From: Pseudomonas aeruginosa PAO1
GTDB taxonomy: Bacteria > Pseudomonadota > Gammaproteobacteria > Pseudomonadales > Pseudomonadaceae
Length of the DNA: 64,000 bases
Assembly: GCF_000006765.1 (NCBI RefSeq)
Contig: NC_002516.2
Strand: one strand, 5' to 3'
Part shown: one piece after another, positions 39,902-50,866 of the stretch
Numbering within the stretch: the first letter of the stretch is position 1
Layout: the number at the start of each line of letters is the position of its first letter
Made by a program: the position numbers and the translations under genes
Notes under the pieces: generated by a model
What the model was told of the DNA's origin: nothing
Database searches by the model: none
What the model saw: only the letters and a program-made list of their open reading frames with translations

Positions 39902-40645
39902 TCACAGGGGTTGGGCGAAGGGGGTGCGGATGTCGGCGAGGAACTTCCGCGCACGCGGGTGCTGCGGGCGGTTGAAGAAATCGTCGGGGCTGGCGCGCTC
40001 CAGCACCCGGCCGGCGTCCATGAACAGCACGCGGTCGGCGACGTCGTGGGCGAAGCCCATCTCATGCGTTACCACCACCATGGTCATGCCGTCGCGGGCC
40101 AGGTCGCGCATCACCAGCAGCACCTCGCCGACCATCTCCGGGTCGAGGGCGCTGGTCGGTTCGTCGAACAGCATCAGCGGCGGCTCCATCGCCAGCGCGC
40201 GGGCGATCGCCACGCGCTGCTGCTGGCCGCCGGAAAGCCGCGCGGGGAACGCCGCCGCTTTGTCCGCCAGGCCGACCCGCTCCAGCAGCGCCATGGCCTG
40301 GCGGCGTGCCTCCGCGGGTTTCAGGCCGCGCAAACGGAGCGACGCCAGGGTGCAGTTGTCCAGCACGTTCAGGTGCGGGAACAGATTGAACTGCTGGAAC
40401 ACGAAGCCGATGTGCGAGCGGAAGCGATTGAGGTCCAGGCCGGGAGCGTGGATGTCCTGGCCATCGATCAGGATGCGCCCGCCCTGGATCGGTTCCAGGC
40501 GGTTCAGGGTACGGATCAGGGTGGATTTTCCGGAGCCCGAGGGTCCGCAGACCACCACCACCTCACCGCGGCCGACCTGTTCGTCGACATCCGCCAGGGC
40601 GTGGTAGGCGCCGTACCATTTGTTGACCTTTTCCAGCCGGATCAT
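39902..40645 (-). CDS. Polar amino acid ABC transporter ATP-binding protein
   Basis: [35 protein letters not shown]. Confidence 0.93.
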
Positions 40646-41346
40646 CGGGCCTCCTTGGGATTGCCACGCTGCGCCTGGCGGCGTTCGAGCCAGAAGGCGA
40701 AACGCGACAGGCCGAAGCACAGGATGAAATAGGTGAGGCCGAGGATCAGGTAGACCTGGGTCGGCAGGGTGAACACCTGGGTATTGATCTGCGAGGCGAT
40801 GAAGCTGACTTCGGCCAGGCCGATGATGTAGCCCAGGGAGGTCTCCTTGATCGTCGAGACGAATTGGTTGACCAACGACGGCAGCATGTTGCGCAGCGCC
40901 TGCGGGAGGACCACCAGGCGCATGCTCGCCAGGTAGCCCAGGCCGAGCGAACGCGCCGCCTCGAACTGGCCACGGTCGAGGCCCTGGATGCCGGCGCGGA
41001 CGATCTCGGCCAGGTACACCGCGTCGAACAGCACAAGCGCCAGCAGCATGGTGGTGAACTGGTCGGTGCGCTGGCCGGTGAGGGTCGGCAGGAAGAAATA
41101 GGCCCAGAAGATCACCATCAGCAACGGCACCCCGCGCACCACGAAGACCAGCGCGGTGACCGGCCAGCGCAGCCAGCGCCAGGGGCTGACCCGCGCCAGG
41201 CCGAGCAGGATGCCCAGCGGCAGCGCCAGCAGCAGCGCCAGCGAGGCCAGGACCAGGGTCAGGGCCAGCCCGCCCAACGGCCCGTTGGGGTACTGGCCGA
41301 CGAGGAAGTACAGCCAGTAGCTATCGATCAGTTCCAGGGTGGTCAT
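40642..41346 (-). CDS. Polar amino acid ABC permease (HisM-like)
   Basis: [30 protein letters not shown]. Confidence 0.9.
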
Positions 41347-42041
41347 CGCCGTTCGACTCCCGGATAGCGCTGCTGGTACCAGGCAGCGGCGCCGGTGATC
41401 AGCAGCGATACGCTGAGATAGGCCGCGGTGGCGAAGGCAAAGGACTCGAAGCTGCGGAAGGTCGAACTCTCCACCTGGCCGGCCTGGTACATCAGCTCGG
41501 CGACGCCGATCACCGTGGCGATGCTGGTGTTCTTCCACAGGTTGAGGGTTTGCGAGATCAGCGGCGGTACGGTGATCCGCAAGGCCTGCGGGAGGATCAC
41601 CAGTCGCATGCTCGCCAGGTAGCCGAAGCCCAGCGCGCGGGCGGCCTCCAGTTGCACCGTGGGCACCGCGCGGATGCCGCTGCGCATGTCCTCACTCATG
41701 AACGCGGCGGTGTACAGGGTCAGCGCGACGATAGCGCTGGCGGCCTCGATGTTGCCGGCGTAGAGCCAGGCCTTGAGGTCCTCGGGTAGCCATTCCGGCG
41801 CGGCGAAGTACCAGAACAGCATGTGCGCCAGCAGCGGTACGTTGCGGATGCTCTCGACATAGGCGAAACCGAGCCATTGCAGGGCGCGGAACGGCGCCAG
41901 GCGCAGCAGCGCCACCAGCATCGCCAGCGGCACGGCGAAGACCAGGGTGACGGCGGCCAGCTTCAGCGACAGCAGCAGGCCGGCGACCAGCATCTCATGG
42001 TACTGGCCGCGCAGCAGCAGGGAGAAATCGAACTCGAACAT
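41343..42041 (-). CDS. Polar amino acid ABC permease (HisQ-like)
   Basis: IRNVPLL, SEDMRSGI, EAARALG, ILPQA. Confidence 0.9.
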   Translation of the reverse strand: MFEFDFSLLLRGQYHEMLVAGLLLSLKLAAVTLVFAVPLAMLVALLRLAPFRALQWLGFAYVESIRNVPLLAHMLFWYFAAPEWLPEDLKAWLYAGNIEAASAIVALTLYTAAFMSEDMRSGIRAVPTVQLEAARALGFGYLASMRLVILPQALRITVPPLISQTLNLWKNTSIATVIGVAELMYQAGQVESSTFRSFESFAFATAAYLSVSLLITGAAAWYQQRYPGVERR

Positions 42042-43111: not shown

Positions 43112-43756
43112 TCAGGTGCCCTCGCGCAAGCGCAGCGGGTCCACCAGCCCGGCGGCGATGGCCATGCCCACCAGCTCCGGCAGGGTCTGGGCCTGCATGC
43201 GCTTCATCACCCGCGCGCGGTAGAGGTCGACGGTCTTCACGCTGACTTCCAGTTGCTCGGCCACCTCGCGGCTGGTATAGCCGCGCACCAGCGGCAAGAG
43301 CACGTCGCGCTCGCGCGGGGTGAGGCTGTCCAGGCGTTCGTGCAACCCGGCGTCGAGATCGTGGTGCCGGCGCCGACGGGCGTGGCGATCGAGGGCCTGC
43401 TGCACGCTGTCGAGCAGCAATTGTTCGTTGTAGGGTTTCTCGATGAAATCCACCGCACCGGCCTTGAAGGCGCGCACCACGATGGGCACGTCGGCATGGC
43501 CGCTGACGAAGATCACCGGCAGGTCGATGCCGCGCGCCAGCAGTTCGTCCTGCACGTTCAGCCCGCCCATGCCGGGCATCCGCACGTCGAGCAGGACGCA
43601 GGCATGGCGGCCGCCCTCGCAGGCATCGAGGAAGTCCCGGCCCTGGGTGAAGGGCCGTGCCTTGAGGCCGACCGATTCCAGCAGCCAGACCGTCGATTCG
43701 AGCATGCCCTGGTCGTCGTCGACCACGTAGACCAGCGCTTCGTCAGGCATAGCCAT
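43112..43756 (-). CDS. bfiR: FixJ-type response regulator BfiR
   Basis: YVVDDD, LLDVRMPG, DFIEKP, LTPRERDVL LuxR-type HTH. Confidence 0.88.
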   Translation of the reverse strand: MAMPDEALVYVVDDDQGMLESTVWLLESVGLKARPFTQGRDFLDACEGGRHACVLLDVRMPGMGGLNVQDELLARGIDLPVIFVSGHADVPIVVRAFKAGAVDFIEKPYNEQLLLDSVQQALDRHARRRRHHDLDAGLHERLDSLTPRERDVLLPLVRGYTSREVAEQLEVSVKTVDLYRARVMKRMQAQTLPELVGMAIAAGLVDPLRLREGT

Positions 43757-43758
43757 CG

Positions 43759-46035
43759 TTACCCTCCCGTGGCGCCGGCGGCGAGCGGCAGCCGGCAGTT
43801 CATGAGCAACCCGCCATCCGCCGGCAGCTCGGCTTCGAGGGTGCCGCCGAAGCCCTCGACGATGCTGCGGCTCATCGACAGGCCCAGGCCCAGCCCTTCC
43901 GGCTTGCTGGTGTGGAACGGCGTGAAAATGTGTTCCAGCTGATCCGCCGGCACTCCCGGTCCCTGGTCGCGAACCCACAGGCAGAGCAGCCCGCCGGGCT
44001 CGACGCGGCTACCGATGACGACCCGCGACGGCGAGCCGGGATGCGCCTCGCGGTTGGCTTCGATGGCGTTGCGCAGCAGATTGAGGAACACCTGTTCGAG
44101 CAGCACGCGGTCGGCATACAGCGGCGGCGGATTGTCGGTCATCGCCTCTTCCACCGCCACTTGCCAGTGCCCGGCTTCCCACGCGCAGAGGCCGATGGCC
44201 TCGCGTGCCACCTGGTTGAGGTCGAGCGCCTGCAGGCGCCGCTGGCCCTTGCGCAGGAAGGCGCGCAGGCGCTTGATCACCTCCGCCGCGTGGCCGGCGT
44301 GCTCGCCGATCCGCGCCAGCCCCTCGGCCACCCGCCCGGCGGCCTCGGGCTGGCTGCCGAGGACGGCCAGGTAACGCTGGCTGGTGCTGGCGTAGTTCAT
44401 CACCGCCGCCAGCGGCTGGTTGATCTCGTGGGCGATGCCCGAGGCCAGTTCGCCGAGAGTGACCAGCCGCGCAGTGTGCGCCAGTTCGTCCTGGTGACGG
44501 CGCTGCTGGGCCTCGCGCAGTTCGCGTTCGGTCATGTCGCGGGCCACCAGCGAGTAATAGCGCTCCTCGCCGCGGCCGCGATGGGCCAGCAACACCAGCG
44601 AGACTGGCAGCGACGGACGTCCGTCCTGCGGTTGCAGGCGCCCCTCGCGGCTCCAAACGCCGCCATCGCGCGCCTGTCGCCAACCCTCTTCGGCCAGCCG
44701 CGCCGGAGTGTCGCCGGCCAGCAGGCGTTCCAGCGCCGGCGCCTCCTGCCCGTCGGCGATGCCGAGGGCGGCACGTGCCGAAGGATTGAGGTAGGTGACG
44801 CGGCCGCCATGCTCGACGAACAGCACCAGGTCGGTGTTCGCCTCGACCACTTCGGCCAGGCGCCGGCGGTTCTCCTCCGCCTCGACCCGCCGGGTGACAT
44901 CGCGGGACACGCTGACCACCTCCACCACCGCCCCGGTGTAGGTCTCGCGGATCGCCCGGCTGGCGGTCTCGAACCAGCGGTAGCGGCCGTCGCGGTGGCG
45001 GATACGGTAGGTGATGGTCAGGTAGCCGTCCTGCTCCAGCGCTTCGCGCGCGCGCAGCGCCACCTGGCCGCGGTCCTGGGGGTGGAACAACGCCTGCGCC
45101 GGACGCCCGCGCAGTTCCTCCGGCCAGTAGCCGAGCAGGGTCCAGGAGGCCGGCGAGGCGTCGAGGAAAATGCCGTCGAGGGTATGCCGGGAAATCAGGT
45201 CGGTGGTGTTCTCGGTGATCAGCCGGTACAGCCGGCTGGCCCGCGCCGCCTCGCGCTCGCCGCGCAGGCTGGCGGTGGCGTCGCGGCAGCGCGCCAGCAC
45301 CCGGGCCTCGGCGCTGTCGGGAATGAACTGCCAGAGCAGGATGCGCCCGTCGCACTCCGCCTCCACCTCGCCGAGGGCCCGCGCCTGCCCCAGGCTGGCG
45401 CGCACCAGTTGCCCATGGTTGGCCGGGAGGTAAGCGCGCCAGGCCTCGCGCGGCCGCTCGCCAAGCAAGGCAAGGAAGGCCTGGTTGAGTTCCACCGCCT
45501 GCGCCTCGCCGTCGAGCAGCAGCGCCGGCTGCGGGTCGGCCGCGAGGAACGGCGCAGCGCGGGTGACGCCACGGGCGGCGGCGAGCAACGGTGCGAGGAG
45601 CAGGCCGAGCCAGTCCAGCGCAGCGCTCTGCGGCGTATCGCTGGCCACCAGCAGCAGGCCTTCGTCGCCGGCCTGCAGGTCGAGGGCGAAGGCCATGCCA
45701 TGCTCCACGCCGGCACGCCGCAAGCGCGCGCCGAGCCAGGACGCGGAACGCCGCAATTCGTCCAGAGCCAGCCGGCCGTCGCGCACCAGCCGCTCGCGCA
45801 ACGCCAGGTCGCTGGCCCGGTTCGGCTCGCCGGCGCCCGGCGGCAGCGCCGGCGACGGCGGCACCGGGGTATAGGTCTGCGCCTGCGGCTGCCAGGCCAG
45901 GTACCAGGCCTGGCGCGTGCCCGGATGTTCGAGCAGCAAGCGGCGCAGCGCACCGACCCGCTCGACCAGCGGCGCGCCCTCGCGCAGCAGGCGCAGGAGG
46001 CTGTTGAGGGCAGGCGAAGCGGGAAGCGGACTCAT
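43759..46035 (-). CDS. bfiS: PAS-domain sensor histidine kinase BfiS
   Basis: 758 aa; PAS repeats, H-box SGIAHEINQPL, N-box NLLRNA, DQGPG, GLGLGL. No evident TM segment. Confidence 0.88.
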   Translation of the reverse strand: MSPLPASPALNSLLRLLREGAPLVERVGALRRLLLEHPGTRQAWYLAWQPQAQTYTPVPPSPALPPGAGEPNRASDLALRERLVRDGRLALDELRRSASWLGARLRRAGVEHGMAFALDLQAGDEGLLLVASDTPQSAALDWLGLLLAPLLAAARGVTRAAPFLAADPQPALLLDGEAQAVELNQAFLALLGERPREAWRAYLPANHGQLVRASLGQARALGEVEAECDGRILLWQFIPDSAEARVLARCRDATASLRGEREAARASRLYRLITENTTDLISRHTLDGIFLDASPASWTLLGYWPEELRGRPAQALFHPQDRGQVALRAREALEQDGYLTITYRIRHRDGRYRWFETASRAIRETYTGAVVEVVSVSRDVTRRVEAEENRRRLAEVVEANTDLVLFVEHGGRVTYLNPSARAALGIADGQEAPALERLLAGDTPARLAEEGWRQARDGGVWSREGRLQPQDGRPSLPVSLVLLAHRGRGEERYYSLVARDMTERELREAQQRRHQDELAHTARLVTLGELASGIAHEINQPLAAVMNYASTSQRYLAVLGSQPEAAGRVAEGLARIGEHAGHAAEVIKRLRAFLRKGQRRLQALDLNQVAREAIGLCAWEAGHWQVAVEEAMTDNPPPLYADRVLLEQVFLNLLRNAIEANREAHPGSPSRVVIGSRVEPGGLLCLWVRDQGPGVPADQLEHIFTPFHTSKPEGLGLGLSMSRSIVEGFGGTLEAELPADGGLLMNCRLPLAAGATGG

Positions 46036-46280
46036 GGGCGGAAGATGATCCTGGGAATTTATATGGTATTTATACTATAAGCTTATGGTTTAACTTCCAT
46101 ATATTTTTCATCGTTGCTATAAATCGCCCCAACCCAAGGAGCGCTTCGCCTGGTCCTTGGAAGCTGTTCACGATCTGCCGAGCCAGAGAAACCAGCCGTT
46201 TTCGACGCAGTCTCTCCGCGCGCGGCAGATCGTGACCCTTACCCAGAACAGAGCTAACAATCAGCCACGGGGTACTCTTC

Positions 46281-47903
46281 ATGTCGATCTTCGAACAGGG
46301 TCTCGCGCCCGCCGCCGTCAACCACATCGCCCTGACGCCGCTGAGCTTCATCGAGCGCACCGCCAGCGTCTATCCGCACTACCCCGCGGTGATCCACGGC
46401 AACATCCGCCGCGACTGGGCGCAGACCTACCAACGCTGCCGACGCCTGGCCTCGGCCCTGGCCGGGCGCGGCATCGGCCAGGGCGACACGGTGGCGGTGA
46501 TGCTGCCGAACATCCCCGAGATGCTCGAGGCGCACTATGGCGTGCCGATGATCGGCGCGGTGCTGAACACCCTCAACGTACGCCTCGACGCCGAAGCCAT
46601 CGCCTTCATGCTGCAACACGGCGAAGCCAAGGTGCTGATCACCGACTACGAATTCCACGAGGTGATCCATGCCGCCATCGGTATGCTCGACCACCCGCCG
46701 CTGGTGGTCGACGTCAACGACCCCGAGTATGGCGAAGGCCGCCCGGTTGGCGAACTGGACTACGAGGCGCTGCTCGCCGAGGGCGACCCGCAGTTCGCCT
46801 GGGAATGGCCCCGGGACGAGTGGCAGGCGATCTCGCTGAACTACACCTCGGGCACCACCGGCAACCCCAAGGGCGTGGTCTACCATCACCGCGGCGCCTA
46901 CCTGAACGCGCTGGGCAACCAGATGACCTGGTCCATGGGCCAGCACCCGGTGTACCTCTGGACCCTGCCGATGTTCCACTGCAACGGCTGGTGCTATCCG
47001 TGGACGGTGACCGCGCTGGCCGGCGTCCACGTCTGCCTGCGGCGGGTCGATCCGCAAAAGGTCCTCACCCTGATCCGCGAGCACCAGGTCAGCCACCTGT
47101 GCGGCGCGCCCATCGTGCTCAACGCCCTGATCAACATGCCCGACTCGGCCAAGGCCGCCATCGACCACCCGGTGCATGCCATGGTCGCCGGCGCCGCGCC
47201 ACCGGCCAAGGTGATCGGCGCGGTGGAAGAGATGGGCATCCGCGTCACCCATGTCTACGGCCTCACCGAGGTCTACGGCCCGGTCACGGTCTGCGCCTGG
47301 CACGGCGAGTGGGACGACCTGCCGCTGGAGCGACGCGCCGCGATCAAGTCGCGCCAGGGCGTGCGCTACCCGACCCTCGAAGGGGTGATGGTGGCCGACC
47401 CGAAGACCCTCGAGCCGGTGCCGCGCGACGGCCAGTCCATCGGCGAGATATTCATGCGCGGCAATACCGTGATGAAGGGCTACCTGAAGAATCCCAGCGC
47501 CACCGAGGAAGCCTTCGCCGGCGGCTGGTTCCATACCGGCGACCTGGCGGTCTGCCATCCGGACGGCTACATCGAGATCCGCGACCGGCTCAAGGACATC
47601 ATCATCTCCGGCGGCGAAAACATCTCCACCATCGAACTGGAGGGCGTGCTCTACCGCCACCCGGCGGTGCTGGAGGCGGCGGTGGTGGCGCGGCCCGACG
47701 AAAAGTGGGGGGAAACGCCCTGTGCGTTCATTACCCTGAAGAGCGATCATCAGGGGCTCGCCGAGAGCGAGATCGTCGCGTTCTGTCGCGAACACCTGGC
47801 CGCGTTCAAGATTCCGCGTACCGTGGTGTTCTCGGAACTGCCGAAGACCTCCACCGGCAAGATCCAGAAATACGTGCTGCGCGAGTGGGCCGCCGCCCTC
47901 TGA
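46281..47903 (+). CDS. dmdB: Acyl-CoA ligase, 3-methylmercaptopropionyl-CoA ligase (DmdB)-like
   Basis: YTSGTTGNPKG AMP-binding motif, YGLTE, GWFHTGD, PKTSTGKIQK. DmdB assignment recalled for this locus. Confidence 0.72.
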   Translation: MSIFEQGLAPAAVNHIALTPLSFIERTASVYPHYPAVIHGNIRRDWAQTYQRCRRLASALAGRGIGQGDTVAVMLPNIPEMLEAHYGVPMIGAVLNTLNVRLDAEAIAFMLQHGEAKVLITDYEFHEVIHAAIGMLDHPPLVVDVNDPEYGEGRPVGELDYEALLAEGDPQFAWEWPRDEWQAISLNYTSGTTGNPKGVVYHHRGAYLNALGNQMTWSMGQHPVYLWTLPMFHCNGWCYPWTVTALAGVHVCLRRVDPQKVLTLIREHQVSHLCGAPIVLNALINMPDSAKAAIDHPVHAMVAGAAPPAKVIGAVEEMGIRVTHVYGLTEVYGPVTVCAWHGEWDDLPLERRAAIKSRQGVRYPTLEGVMVADPKTLEPVPRDGQSIGEIFMRGNTVMKGYLKNPSATEEAFAGGWFHTGDLAVCHPDGYIEIRDRLKDIIISGGENISTIELEGVLYRHPAVLEAAVVARPDEKWGETPCAFITLKSDHQGLAESEIVAFCREHLAAFKIPRTVVFSELPKTSTGKIQKYVLREWAAAL

Positions 47904-48020
47904 GCGCCGCCAGCCGAATTGCCCGTGCAGCGGCCGTGCCACGGCGGCCGTAGGCAGGATGCGCACGGGCAACCCTGTACCTGCGGCCGTCCCGCCGGCC
48001 GTTCACCGACGAGGTGTGCA

Positions 48021-49802
48021 ATGCCTGAATACAACGCCCCGCTGCGCGACATGCGCTTCCTGCTCAACGACGTGTTCGACGCCCCCGCCCTGTGGCAGCG
48101 CCTGCCGCGACTGGCCGAGCGGATCGACGCCGACACCGCCGACGCCATCCTCGAGGAAGCGGCCAAGGTCACCGGCGGCCTGCTCGCGCCGCTCAACCGC
48201 AGTGGCGACGAAGAAGGCGCGCAGTGGCAGGACGGCGCCGTGCGCACCCCGGCCGGCTTCCGCGAGGCCTACGCGACCTACGCCGAGGGCGGCTGGGTCG
48301 GCCTCACCGGCAATCCGGCCCATGGCGGCATGGGCATGCCGAAGATGCTGGCAGTGCAGTTCGAGGAGATGATGTACGCGGCCAACGCCAGCTTCAGCCT
48401 CTACTCGACCCTTTCCGCCGGCGCCTGCCTGGCCCTCGATGCGCACGGCAGCGAGGAGCTGAAGAACAGGTACCTGCCGAACATGTACGCCGGCACCTGG
48501 GCCGGCTCCATGTGCCTGACCGAACCGCACGCCGGCACCGACCTGGGCATCATCCGCACCAAGGCCGAGCCGCAGGCCGACGGTTCATACAGGATCAGCG
48601 GGACGAAGATCTTCATCACCGGCGGCGAGCAGGACCTCACCGAGAACATCATCCACCTGGTGCTGGCCAAGCTGCCCGACGCGCCGGCCGGTTCGCGCGG
48701 CATCTCGCTGTTCCTGGTGCCGAAGTTCCTGGTCGGCGACGACGGCGCGCTCGGCGCACGCAACGCGGTGCACTGCGGCTCCATCGAGCACAAGATGGGG
48801 ATCAAGGCCTCGGCCACCTGCGTGATGAACTTCGACGGCGCCAGTGGCTGGCTGGTCGGCGAAGTCAACAAGGGCCTGGCGGCGATGTTCACCATGATGA
48901 ACTACGAGCGCCTGTCCATCGGCATCCAGGGCATCGGCTGCGCCGAGATGTCCTACCAGAGCGCCGTCGCCTACGCCCGCGAGCGCCTGCAAAGCCGCGC
49001 GCCGACCGGCCCGGTGGCCAGGGACAAGGCCGCCGACCCGATCATCGTGCACCCCGACGTGCGCCGCATGCTGCTCACCATGAAGGCGCTGACCGAGGGC
49101 GGCCGCGCCTTTTCCACCTATGTCGGGCAGCAGCTCGACCTGGCCAAGTACGCCGAGGACCAGGAAGAACGCAGCCAGGCCGAAGCCCTGGTGGCCCTGT
49201 TGACCCCGGTGGCCAAGGCCTTCTTCACCGATACCGGCCTGGAGAGCTGCGTGCTCGGCCAGCAGGTGTTCGGCGGCCACGGCTACATCCGCGAATGGGG
49301 CCAGGAGCAACTGGTGCGCGACGTACGCATCGCGCAGATCTACGAAGGCACCAACGGCATCCAGGCGCTCGACCTGATGGGCCGCAAGGTGGTCGCCAAC
49401 GGCGGGCTGTTCCTCTCCATCTTCAGCCGCGAGGTGCGAGCCTTCGCCGCCGGCGCCAACGCCGAACTGGCGGAGTTCGTCACCCCGCTGCTGACCGCCC
49501 TGGACCTGCTGGACAACCTCACCCAGGGCATCGTCGCCCGCGCCGGCAACGACCCGCGCGAGATCGGCGCAGCCTCGGTGGAATACCTGCATCTGTTCGG
49601 CTATACCGCCTACGCCTACCTCTGGGCGCGCATGGCCGCCGCCGCGCAGCGCCAGCGCGAGGTCGACCCGGCGTTCCACGACGGCAAGCTGGCCACTGCG
49701 CGCTTCTACTTCGCCCGCATCCTGCCCCGCGTGCACTCCCTCGCCGCCGCCGTCGAAGCCGGCAGCGAAAGCCTGTACGGCCTGGAGGCGGAACAGTTCT
49801 GA
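48021..49802 (+). CDS. Acyl-CoA dehydrogenase, DmdC-like long form
   Basis: MCLTEPHAGTDL, GTKIFIT, EHKMGIKASAT, GGHGYIRE, IYEGTNGIQALDL, plus C-terminal extension. Confidence 0.88.
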   Translation: MPEYNAPLRDMRFLLNDVFDAPALWQRLPRLAERIDADTADAILEEAAKVTGGLLAPLNRSGDEEGAQWQDGAVRTPAGFREAYATYAEGGWVGLTGNPAHGGMGMPKMLAVQFEEMMYAANASFSLYSTLSAGACLALDAHGSEELKNRYLPNMYAGTWAGSMCLTEPHAGTDLGIIRTKAEPQADGSYRISGTKIFITGGEQDLTENIIHLVLAKLPDAPAGSRGISLFLVPKFLVGDDGALGARNAVHCGSIEHKMGIKASATCVMNFDGASGWLVGEVNKGLAAMFTMMNYERLSIGIQGIGCAEMSYQSAVAYARERLQSRAPTGPVARDKAADPIIVHPDVRRMLLTMKALTEGGRAFSTYVGQQLDLAKYAEDQEERSQAEALVALLTPVAKAFFTDTGLESCVLGQQVFGGHGYIREWGQEQLVRDVRIAQIYEGTNGIQALDLMGRKVVANGGLFLSIFSREVRAFAAGANAELAEFVTPLLTALDLLDNLTQGIVARAGNDPREIGAASVEYLHLFGYTAYAYLWARMAAAAQRQREVDPAFHDGKLATARFYFARILPRVHSLAAAVEAGSESLYGLEAEQF

Positions 49803-49813
49803 AGCTTCCGTCG

Positions 49814-49839
49814 CGCGGCCCGTGGGCCGCGTGTTTTTT
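49814..49839 (+). terminator. Rho-independent terminator after the acyl-CoA dehydrogenase
   Basis: CGCGGCCC/GGGCCGCG stem followed by TGTTTTTT. Confidence 0.8.
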
Positions 49840-49884
49840 CCGGGACAGCATGCAACGCGCTGTCCGCCGACAGCCCGCGATAAC

Positions 49885-49999: not shown

Positions 50000-50866
50000 A
50001 TGCGAACCCTCACCACCCTCCTCGGCAACAGCCAGAAACTCGACGGCGGCGCCATGTTCGGCAATGCCCCGCGCGCGCTCTGGTCACGCTGGATGCAGCC
50101 CGATGCGGAGAACCGCATCGACCTCGGCTGCCGTGCCCTGCTGGTGCGCGACGGCGAGCGCAACGTACTGGTGGAGGCCGGCATCGGCGCGTTCTTCCCG
50201 CCCGCCCTGCGCCAGCGCTACGGCGTCCAGGAAGAGCGCCACGTACTGCTCGACAGCCTCGCCGCGGTCGGCCTGGACGACGCCGACATCGACGTGGTGC
50301 TGCTCACCCACCTGCACTTCGACCACGCCGGCGGCCTGCTCGCCGCCTGGGAAGAAGGCCAGCCGGCGCGCCTGCTGTTCCCCAACGCGCATTTCGTCAG
50401 CGGCCGCCGCCACTGGCAGCGCGCGCGCCAGCCGCACCCGCGCGACCGAGCCTCGTTCGTGCCGGAACTGCTCGACCTGCTGCAGGCCAGCGGACGCCTG
50501 GAACTGCTCGATGACGGCGAGCGCTCGGCGCACCTGGGCGAGGGCTGGCGTTTCCATTTCAGCGAAGGCCATACCCCGGGCCAGATGCTCCCGGAGATCG
50601 CCATGCCCGACGGCCCGGTGGTATTCAGCGGCGACCTGATCCCCGGCGCACCCTGGGTACACCTACCGCTGACCATGGGCTACGACCGCTTCCCGGAAGG
50701 CCTGATCGAGGAAAAGGAACGCCTGCTGGACAGCCTCATCGCCCGCAACGGCCGACTGGTCTTCACCCATGATCCATGCGTCGCCATGGGCCGGGTGCGA
50801 CGCGACGAACAGGAGCGCTACAGCCTCTACGACACCCTCGAGCGGGTCGAGAACCTCGAGGCCTGA
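50000..50866 (+). CDS. Metallo-beta-lactamase-fold hydrolase, YtnP-like
   Basis: [34 protein letters not shown]. Confidence 0.88.

Follow-up and report, generated by a model that had tools for sequence, protein, structure and literature searches.

The TodS/TodT and StyS/StyR systems each pair a cytoplasmic PAS sensor with a response regulator whose GerE-type helix-turn-helix (HTH) domain recognizes palindromic boxes in the activator-dependent promoter of an adjacent catabolic operon. The AtoS/AtoC, CrbS/CrbR, and MctS/MctR systems exert two-component control over the activation of short-chain acids with coenzyme A (CoA) and over a monocarboxylate symporter. The FixL/FixJ system, which senses oxygen in rhizobia and Burkholderia, consists of a PAS-PAS-DHp-CA kinase (DHp, dimerization and histidine phosphotransfer; CA, catalytic ATPase) and a regulator with receiver (REC) and GerE domains, and is linked to fixK/nifA-type targets. 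In RpfR/RpfB signaling by the diffusible signal factors DSF-BDSF, a medium-chain fatty acid is the ligand of a cytoplasmic PAS domain, and the signal is turned over by an acyl-CoA ligase encoded beside the signaling genes. The system considered here is BfiSR, the biofilm-initiation sensor kinase-response regulator pair that forms a textbook step of Pseudomonas aeruginosa biofilm development; in a 64,000-nt stretch of P. aeruginosa PAO1 DNA (NC_002516.2; the window), bfiR-bfiS lies head-to-head with the acyl-CoA ligase and acyl-CoA dehydrogenase genes PA4198-PA4199. In the literature within reach, neither the signal of BfiS nor the DNA motif of BfiR is reported. The comparative evidence set out below suggests that the primary job of BfiSR is probably to regulate carboxylic-acid catabolism.

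BfiSR shares with FixL/FixJ the combination of a PAS-PAS-DHp-CA kinase and a REC-GerE regulator and finds its best family and fold matches there; unlike FixL/FixJ, it falls below both equivalog cut-offs, lacks a proximal histidine in the F-alpha helix, and is tied to an acyl-CoA ligase operon. The scheme proposed here resembles TodS/TodT and StyS/StyR in design; in contrast to TodS and StyS, which are double kinases responding to aromatic hydrocarbons, BfiS is a single kinase, and its substrate is apparently an aliphatic carboxylate. BfiSR matches the AtoS and MctR models weakly, far below their cut-offs, and differs further from these systems in that AtoC is sigma-54 dependent and CrbS has its own SSF domain. 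RpfR is a cyclic di-GMP enzyme, not a kinase, and its likeness to BfiS is known only at the level of the PAS fold.

The bfiR gene (PA4196; 43112-43756, minus strand) encodes a 214-amino-acid protein with a Response_reg (REC) domain and a GerE/LuxR-type HTH domain; its start codon is the ATG at 43756, separated by the dinucleotide CG from the TAA stop codon of bfiS. The bfiS gene (PA4197; 43759-46035, minus strand) encodes a 758-amino-acid protein with PAS domains followed by HisKA and HATPase_c domains. A divergent intergenic region of exactly 245 bp (46036-46280) leads to PA4198 (46281-47903, plus strand), an acyl-CoA ligase of 540 amino acids with AMP-binding and AMP-binding_C domains, and then to PA4199 (48021-49802, plus strand), an acyl-CoA dehydrogenase of 593 amino acids with four domains of that family including Acyl-CoA_dh_C. 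PA4196-4197 have been described as BfiSR (PMC2774163), and PA4198 is identified by published cloning primers (PMC3667196), which match window positions 46192-46211 and the first codons of PA4199. Gene calls and domains agree with a first-pass annotation of this DNA, made from the letters alone, which placed BfiSR divergent from a ligase and a dehydrogenase across 245 bp; only the start codons of bfiR and the dehydrogenase needed amendment, and the 3′ end of bfiR at 43112 stands. A 6.3-Mb P. aeruginosa genome (G001) that has 95% of the words of the window in common encodes copies of the locus proteins that are 99-100% identical.

The divergent arrangement is widely conserved. Among 201 Pseudomonadaceae genomes from 21 genera, 85 genomes in 12 genera have BfiS orthologues; in 83 of these the ligase gene is on the same contig, adjacent and on the opposite strand at a distance of 150-340 bp, and the remaining two loci are broken by contig ends. 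Within the aeruginosa-group genus, BfiS and the ligase are jointly present or jointly absent, BfiS orthologues being found in 18 of 34 species with a divergent, adjacent ligase in 18 of 18. The same arrangement is seen in 15 of 16 loci fetched from four other families of the order, and the linkage is kept in distant kin (family f50) whose proteins are approximately 38% (BfiS), 42-45% (BfiR), and 64-66% (ligase) identical. In a collection of species representatives, 78 of 80 named loci have the linkage (the two exceptions are contigs of 1.1 and 2.9 kb); these include Azotobacter, Aquipseudomonas, Zobellella, Photobacterium ganghwense, the betaproteobacterium Kerstersia similis, and Alloalcanivorax. 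Linkage in Photobacterium, Zobellella, Kerstersia, and Alloalcanivorax argues for transfer of the whole cassette between orders. Regulator and target operon are adjacent and co-inherited, as in other two-component-controlled catabolic divergons, and on this comparative evidence bfiSR and the ligase operon are not a chance neighborhood. The first-pass annotation had tied the ligase and dehydrogenase functionally to BfiSR and had named a lack of conserved linkage as grounds for abandoning the idea; the linkage is clearly conserved, in every locus that could be checked, and together with the genome-unique palindromic operator described below it supports the predicted tie.

A P. putida strain (locus L176) has the gene order bfiR<bfiS< >lig>acad, which fits the numbering PP_3553/PP_3554, two P. 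putida genes linked to butyrate in a study by randomly barcoded transposon sequencing (RB-TnSeq); PP_3553 is a candidate PA4198 orthologue from this locus numbering, as a lead only. PP_0763 was judged unlikely to be the orthologue; we take it to be of the PA3924 type, with DUF1302/DUF1329 and LuxR neighbors.

When the 300 nt preceding the ligase start codon are aligned for 33 loci of 12 genera, three conserved blocks stand out in an otherwise freely drifting bfiS-ligase spacer. The first block is a pair of neighboring palindromes. P1 (TATGGTA-TTTA-TACTATA; 46062-46079) is a perfect 7-4-7 palindrome centered at about -60 of the ligase promoter and the proposed site for a BfiR dimer; P2 (TATGGTT-TAAC-TTCCATA; 46084-46101) is also of 7-4-7 form, is centered at about -38 so that it covers the -35 position, and is proposed as a second BfiR site, 22 bp from P1 center to center. 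The second block, cTATAAa, corresponds in the window to TGCTATAAAT (46115-46124, plus strand), an extended -10-like box; the ligase promoter shows no -35 consensus. The third block, at the ribosome-binding site, is described with the mRNA leader below. P1, P2, and the -10 box are conserved in 33 of 33 aligned loci and also in families f57 and f24, and almost all of the aligned loci keep P2 and the -10 box at the same ungapped distance, two having an insertion between them. A sigma-70 scan found no complete promoter for the ligase, which fits an activator-dependent promoter.

This conserved operator at the target promoter is specific. With one mismatch allowed, each of five genomes representing five other genera has a single copy of the palindrome, and that copy is invariably at this locus; with two allowed, G001 has four sites, two of which are P1 and P2, against 10 for a reversed control pattern, and the chance expectation in the window is 0.15. 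It is likely, as judged from these sequences, that BfiR controls the ligase operon through P1 and P2. Because just 26 bp separate P1 from the start codon of bfiS, the two sites probably affect transcription of bfiSR as well (autoregulation). The only other near-perfect copy in G001 is AATAGTAGTTTTACTATA (G001:C1:930345-930362; L068 3046-3063), with one mismatch, in an AT-rich spacer approximately 195 bp upstream of a gene for a 214-amino-acid LuxR-type orphan response regulator and next to a set of fimbrial (cupB-like) genes. This copy may represent a further BfiR site with a bearing on attachment. A further site, at G001:4488748, lies inside an open reading frame and was taken as chance.

BfiR has the REC plus GerE architecture of FixJ (Pfam Response_reg, 1.2e-24; GerE, 3.4e-15). 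Its recognition helix, KT[VI][DN]LYR, is kept in every lineage that retains the palindrome. In family f50 the helix has EVH in place of DLY, and another conserved motif stands where the palindrome would be; motif and recognition helix change together, which ties the sites to BfiR. In two relatives with small genomes (G126 and G157), bfiS and the receiver portion of bfiR are missing, bfiR being reduced to a 101-amino-acid stand-alone HTH gene (L183 9167-9472 and L184 8911-9264, minus strand), and in both the palindromes and the HTH gene persist beside genes for the ligase, a permease, the dehydrogenase, and a metallo-β-lactamase (MBL)-fold hydrolase. Such a stand-alone DNA-binding domain could amount to a constitutive switch of natural origin.

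The ligase PA4198 belongs to the PRK08162 subfamily (NF006020; 1007.9 bits, cut-off 677), and its identity to orthologues is 76-90% across Pseudomonadaceae genera and 71% in one small genome. Its best structural match in the Protein Data Bank (PDB) is the long-chain fatty acyl-CoA synthetase (FACS) of Thermus, at 297 bits. PA4198 has been cloned and tried for rescue of Escherichia coli fadD mutants on C10 and C18 fatty acids, and it is not one of the four genes reported as FACS in that screen, in which the butyrate ligase of P. aeruginosa was still missing (PMC3667196). On the comparative evidence, PA4198 is a candidate for this missing enzyme, whether a butyrate ligase or, more broadly, a short-chain acyl-CoA ligase.

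The dehydrogenase PA4199 belongs to the clade of DmdC and FadE1-FadE2, with PF12806 in addition to the N, M, and 1 domains, the four-domain architecture that it has in common with FadE2 (PA0508) and DmdC. Its closest structural match is 8PNG (981 bits), a chain marked as FadE2/PA0508 by the residues Met130, Glu296, and Gln303, followed by 8PNS at 661 bits. FadE2 accepts medium-chain acyl-CoAs only. In PA4199 the two residues that block the tunnel, Glu296 and Gln303, are retained, and residue 130 is Thr in contrast to the Met130 of FadE2; the two enzymes also differ in context, PA4199 being encoded in the BfiSR cassette and FadE2 in the PA0506-0508 cluster. By sequence, PA4198-PA4199 looks like a module for the activation and dehydrogenation of short- or medium-chain acids.

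The make-up of the operon in relatives points in the same direction. In the aeruginosa group the dehydrogenase gene directly follows the ligase gene; elsewhere, genes for a DUF485 protein and an SSF symporter of the ActP/MctP type, or for a 457-amino-acid permease, are inserted after the ligase. Genes for an acetoacetyl-CoA-type thiolase, an OprD-family porin, and an MBL hydrolase are frequent additions to the cluster. Because relatives add the symporter or permease, the OprD porin, and the thiolase, the operon is read as catabolic; its make-up fits uptake and β-oxidation of an exogenous short- or medium-chain monocarboxylic acid. PA4200 (50000-50866, plus strand; Pfam Lactamase_B), the MBL-fold hydrolase gene of the window, scores 152 bits against the YtnP model, below the cut-off of 425, and genes of its type are in the cluster in many genera, frequently although not constantly. 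An intrinsic terminator with a 9-bp stem, eight GC pairs, and a T-run closes the PA4198-PA4199 operon (49812-49843, plus strand), and none was found in the 117-nt ligase-dehydrogenase spacer (47904-48020). The spacer is GC-rich and has hairpin potential with no T-run; the transporter genes of other genera are inserted exactly there.

BfiS begins with a GAF-like domain (residues 1-160; 45556-46035, minus strand) that is facultative. The AlphaFold2 (AF2) model of this domain (predicted local distance difference test score, pLDDT, 87) matches GAF domains and LuxR-receptor ligand-binding domains in Foldseek at template modeling (TM) scores of 0.5-0.6, and it also resembles the autoinducer-binding domain of LasR/CviR. 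It is followed by a tandem PAS core (residues 160-395; 44851-45558, minus strand; AF2 pLDDT 93), by a third PAS domain (residues 396-510; 44506-44850, minus strand) that is dispensable in several lineages, being absent in G005, g14, g5, f24, and part of f57, and by a FixL-like kinase module of DHp (HisKA) and catalytic ATPase (HATPase_c) domains (residues 511-758; 43762-44505, minus strand). Other genera have BfiS forms of roughly 480-640 amino acids that lack either or both of the GAF-like and third PAS domains, and the GAF-like domain may be an add-on input particular to some species. In orthologue alignments from 12 genera the tandem PAS core is the sole sensor part found in all BfiS proteins, the kinase being likewise universal. 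The second PAS domain (residues 265-390) is nearly invariant between genera and is likely the signal-receiving element. Among the 2194 members of the 90%-identity BfiS cluster are many shorter proteins of 546-689 amino acids, which could be truncation alleles in isolates or the result of unequal start calls.

The first-pass annotation saw no transmembrane helix in BfiS, and hydropathy bears this out: the best 19-residue Kyte-Doolittle window (residues 139-157) scores 1.5, below the usual cut-off of 1.6 for such a helix. This segment is rich in Leu and Ala, includes Asp and Pro, and falls inside the GAF-like domain that several lineages lack.

The 5′ untranslated region (5′UTR) of the ligase mRNA includes the third of the blocks conserved across genera, GAGCTAACAATCAGCCACGGGG (46251-46272, plus strand), with the A-rich sequence AACAAUCA next to the ribosome-binding site; this sequence is similar to Hfq/Crc targets and is a candidate catabolite-repression motif on the ligase mRNA. 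PA4198 is among the catabolic genes reported to be controlled post-transcriptionally by Crc (PMC6235884). Upstream of this block is a long hairpin (46169-46234, plus strand) with perfect 11-bp arms (minimum free energy -56 kcal/mol, z -2.45). Of the 33 aligned loci, only that of the window and that of its closest relative (L036) carry the hairpin segment as an insertion, and other species of the genus have a different hairpin in its place; an Rfam scan of the intergenic region and hairpin found no family, only sub-threshold noise.

With moderate confidence we favor the reading that bfiSR belongs with the divergent ligase operon in a single regulatory cassette, which would work as follows. BfiS, a soluble GAF-PAS-PAS-PAS kinase, would detect a cytoplasmic cue through its tandem PAS core, the cue being the short- or medium-chain carboxylic acid of the operon or its CoA thioester, and would phosphorylate BfiR. 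Dimers of BfiR~P would bind P1 and P2 and switch on PA4198 and PA4199; the corresponding promoter in relatives would likewise drive the monocarboxylate symporter or permease, the OprD porin, and the thiolase. The A-rich block at the ribosome-binding site would in addition put the ligase mRNA under catabolite repression by Hfq/Crc. A short- or medium-chain acyl metabolite is a reasonable candidate for the signal of BfiS because the linkage is conserved and the operator is on the ligase promoter. A cue identical to the operon substrate is the most economical choice by analogy to other PAS-kinase/GerE-regulator pairs beside catabolic operons; that this acid or acyl-CoA is indeed the cue is about an even call.

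Several observations weigh against this cassette model. Activation is preferred to repression from the geometry of the sites around a presumed transcription start. The published output of BfiSR is activation of cafA (RNase G), a direct BfiR target, and lowering of rsmZ, to which the cue would have to be linked; no palindrome-like site with three or fewer mismatches is present within approximately 1.4 kb upstream of rng/cafA in G001, so that BfiR would use a weaker or different site there or act indirectly, or the palindrome would be used by another protein. None of the papers retrieved for PA4198, PA4196, or BfiS/BfiR describes PA4198/PA4199 as BfiR-regulated genes, and the text of the P. putida RB-TnSeq study names two-component systems other than the neighbors of PP_3553 for butyrate. 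In a biofilm core transcriptome PA4198 and PA4200 are approximately 2.5-fold lower, along with denitrification genes (PMC6954232), which shows that both respond to the biofilm state and could fit an oxygen or redox cue equally well.

A variant of the cassette model, tentative and rather doubtful, changes the role of the enzymes: the invariant cytoplasmic PAS domain of BfiS would bind a fatty-acid-type molecule, either a short-chain acid or acyl-CoA serving as a nutrient or a DSF-like signal of medium chain length, and the adjacent ligase and dehydrogenase would consume this molecule and so reset the signal, which would gate irreversible attachment via BfiR.

An oxygen or redox cue is unlikely. 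In this proposal BfiSR would be a FixLJ-type sensor and the β-oxidation genes would be among the respiration-dependent functions that it tunes; a recent review proposes oxygen sensing for BfiSR and states that it is undemonstrated (PMC12071387, 2025). The best family matches of the pair are indeed FixL and FixJ, but BfiS scores only 184.4 bits against the FixL equivalog (NF041777; cut-off 850) and BfiR only 203.5 bits against FixJ (NF006900; cut-off 255), its best NCBIfam match. The kinase core is FixL-like (153 bits against the FixL module of PDB chimeras 8a7f and 4gcz), the short BfiS forms of approximately 480-500 amino acids have the FixL domain order, and the best global fit of the tandem-PAS model is the PAS-A/PAS-B tandem of the FixL dimer (8js5; TM 0.62). 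Yet none of the BfiS PAS domains has a sequence match among haem-PAS chains in the PDB, and the F-alpha helix of the invariant PAS (BfiS residues 319-335; model helix 160-176) is devoid of His, His318 being only at the N-cap. In the long form of BfiS, moreover, the PAS adjacent to the kinase is the dispensable one. The missed equivalog cut-offs, the want of a haem-PAS match, and a helix without His together make a FixL-type haem oxygen sensor unlikely, and the haem-FixL reading of BfiS was rejected on these sequence and model grounds. A flavin or other redox cofactor is possible: BfiS has weak matches to the flavin PAS proteins NifL and MmoS, and the MmoS PAS is the only PDB sequence match of the third PAS domain. 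The joint fall of PA4198 and PA4200 with the nir/nor/nos genes in biofilms also agrees with a redox cue, whereas strict coupling to ligase and uptake genes is a usual feature of catabolic operons induced by their substrate.

The first-pass annotation compared the two enzymes with DmdB and DmdC of methylmercaptopropionate (MMPA) degradation and proposed that BfiS senses MMPA or a short acyl(-CoA) metabolite. The specific version, a DmdB/DmdC module with MMPA or MMPA-CoA as the cue, is improbable. PA4198 is a homologue of DmdB (6ihk, 239 bits) but reaches 311.8 bits against the DmdB equivalog (NF005426), for which the cut-off is 822; a paralogous ligase in G001, which to judge from its position may be PA3924/FadD6, scores 463 bits on the same model, and no ligase of that genome passes 822. 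PA4199 is a full-length homologue of DmdC (6IJC, 592 bits, E 9e-177), although it is far nearer to FadE2 (981 bits). MMPA is close to valerate in size and could be accepted by a short- or medium-chain ligase and dehydrogenase, and extracts of PAO1 and a DmdB homologue of that strain, from whichever locus, reportedly act on MMPA. However, no dmdA- or dmdD-type gene is among the conserved neighbors in any mapped locus, and the partner genes are those of generic monocarboxylate uptake and a thiolase. MMPA is a possible substrate by size that nothing singles out.

It is very unlikely that the neighborhood is conserved without BfiR control, the palindrome serving, for example, another regulator or bfiSR autoregulation only and the ligase being controlled elsewhere: the proximity of the palindromes to the bfiS start would allow action on bfiS alone, and the motif-free cafA and the lack of an experimental link in the papers retrieved for PA4198, PA4196, or BfiS/BfiR agree with this, but the spacing of P2 to the ligase -10 box is fixed in almost all aligned loci, the sites and the HTH gene persist in G126 and G157 with no bfiS left to autoregulate, the cassette has travelled between orders as a unit, and the motif alters together with the BfiR recognition helix.

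Next to the cassette in the window, two genes for amino-acid-type ABC transporter permeases (GltK/EhuC-like; 40642-42041, minus strand) lie upstream of bfiR and are not conserved with it.

The BfiSR locus is a well-defined new example of a two-component-controlled catabolic divergon. The comparative evidence offers a testable operator (46062-46101), a probable primary BfiR regulon of PA4198-PA4199 and perhaps PA4200, and a narrow candidate ligand class of C4-C8 carboxylates, counting MMPA, with their CoA esters. The same evidence suggests that BfiSR is an old catabolic regulator, widespread in Pseudomonadaceae, whose biofilm role in P. aeruginosa was elaborated in a species-specific way; if this is true, bfiS phenotypes, and any bfiS variants in isolates, would be read differently.

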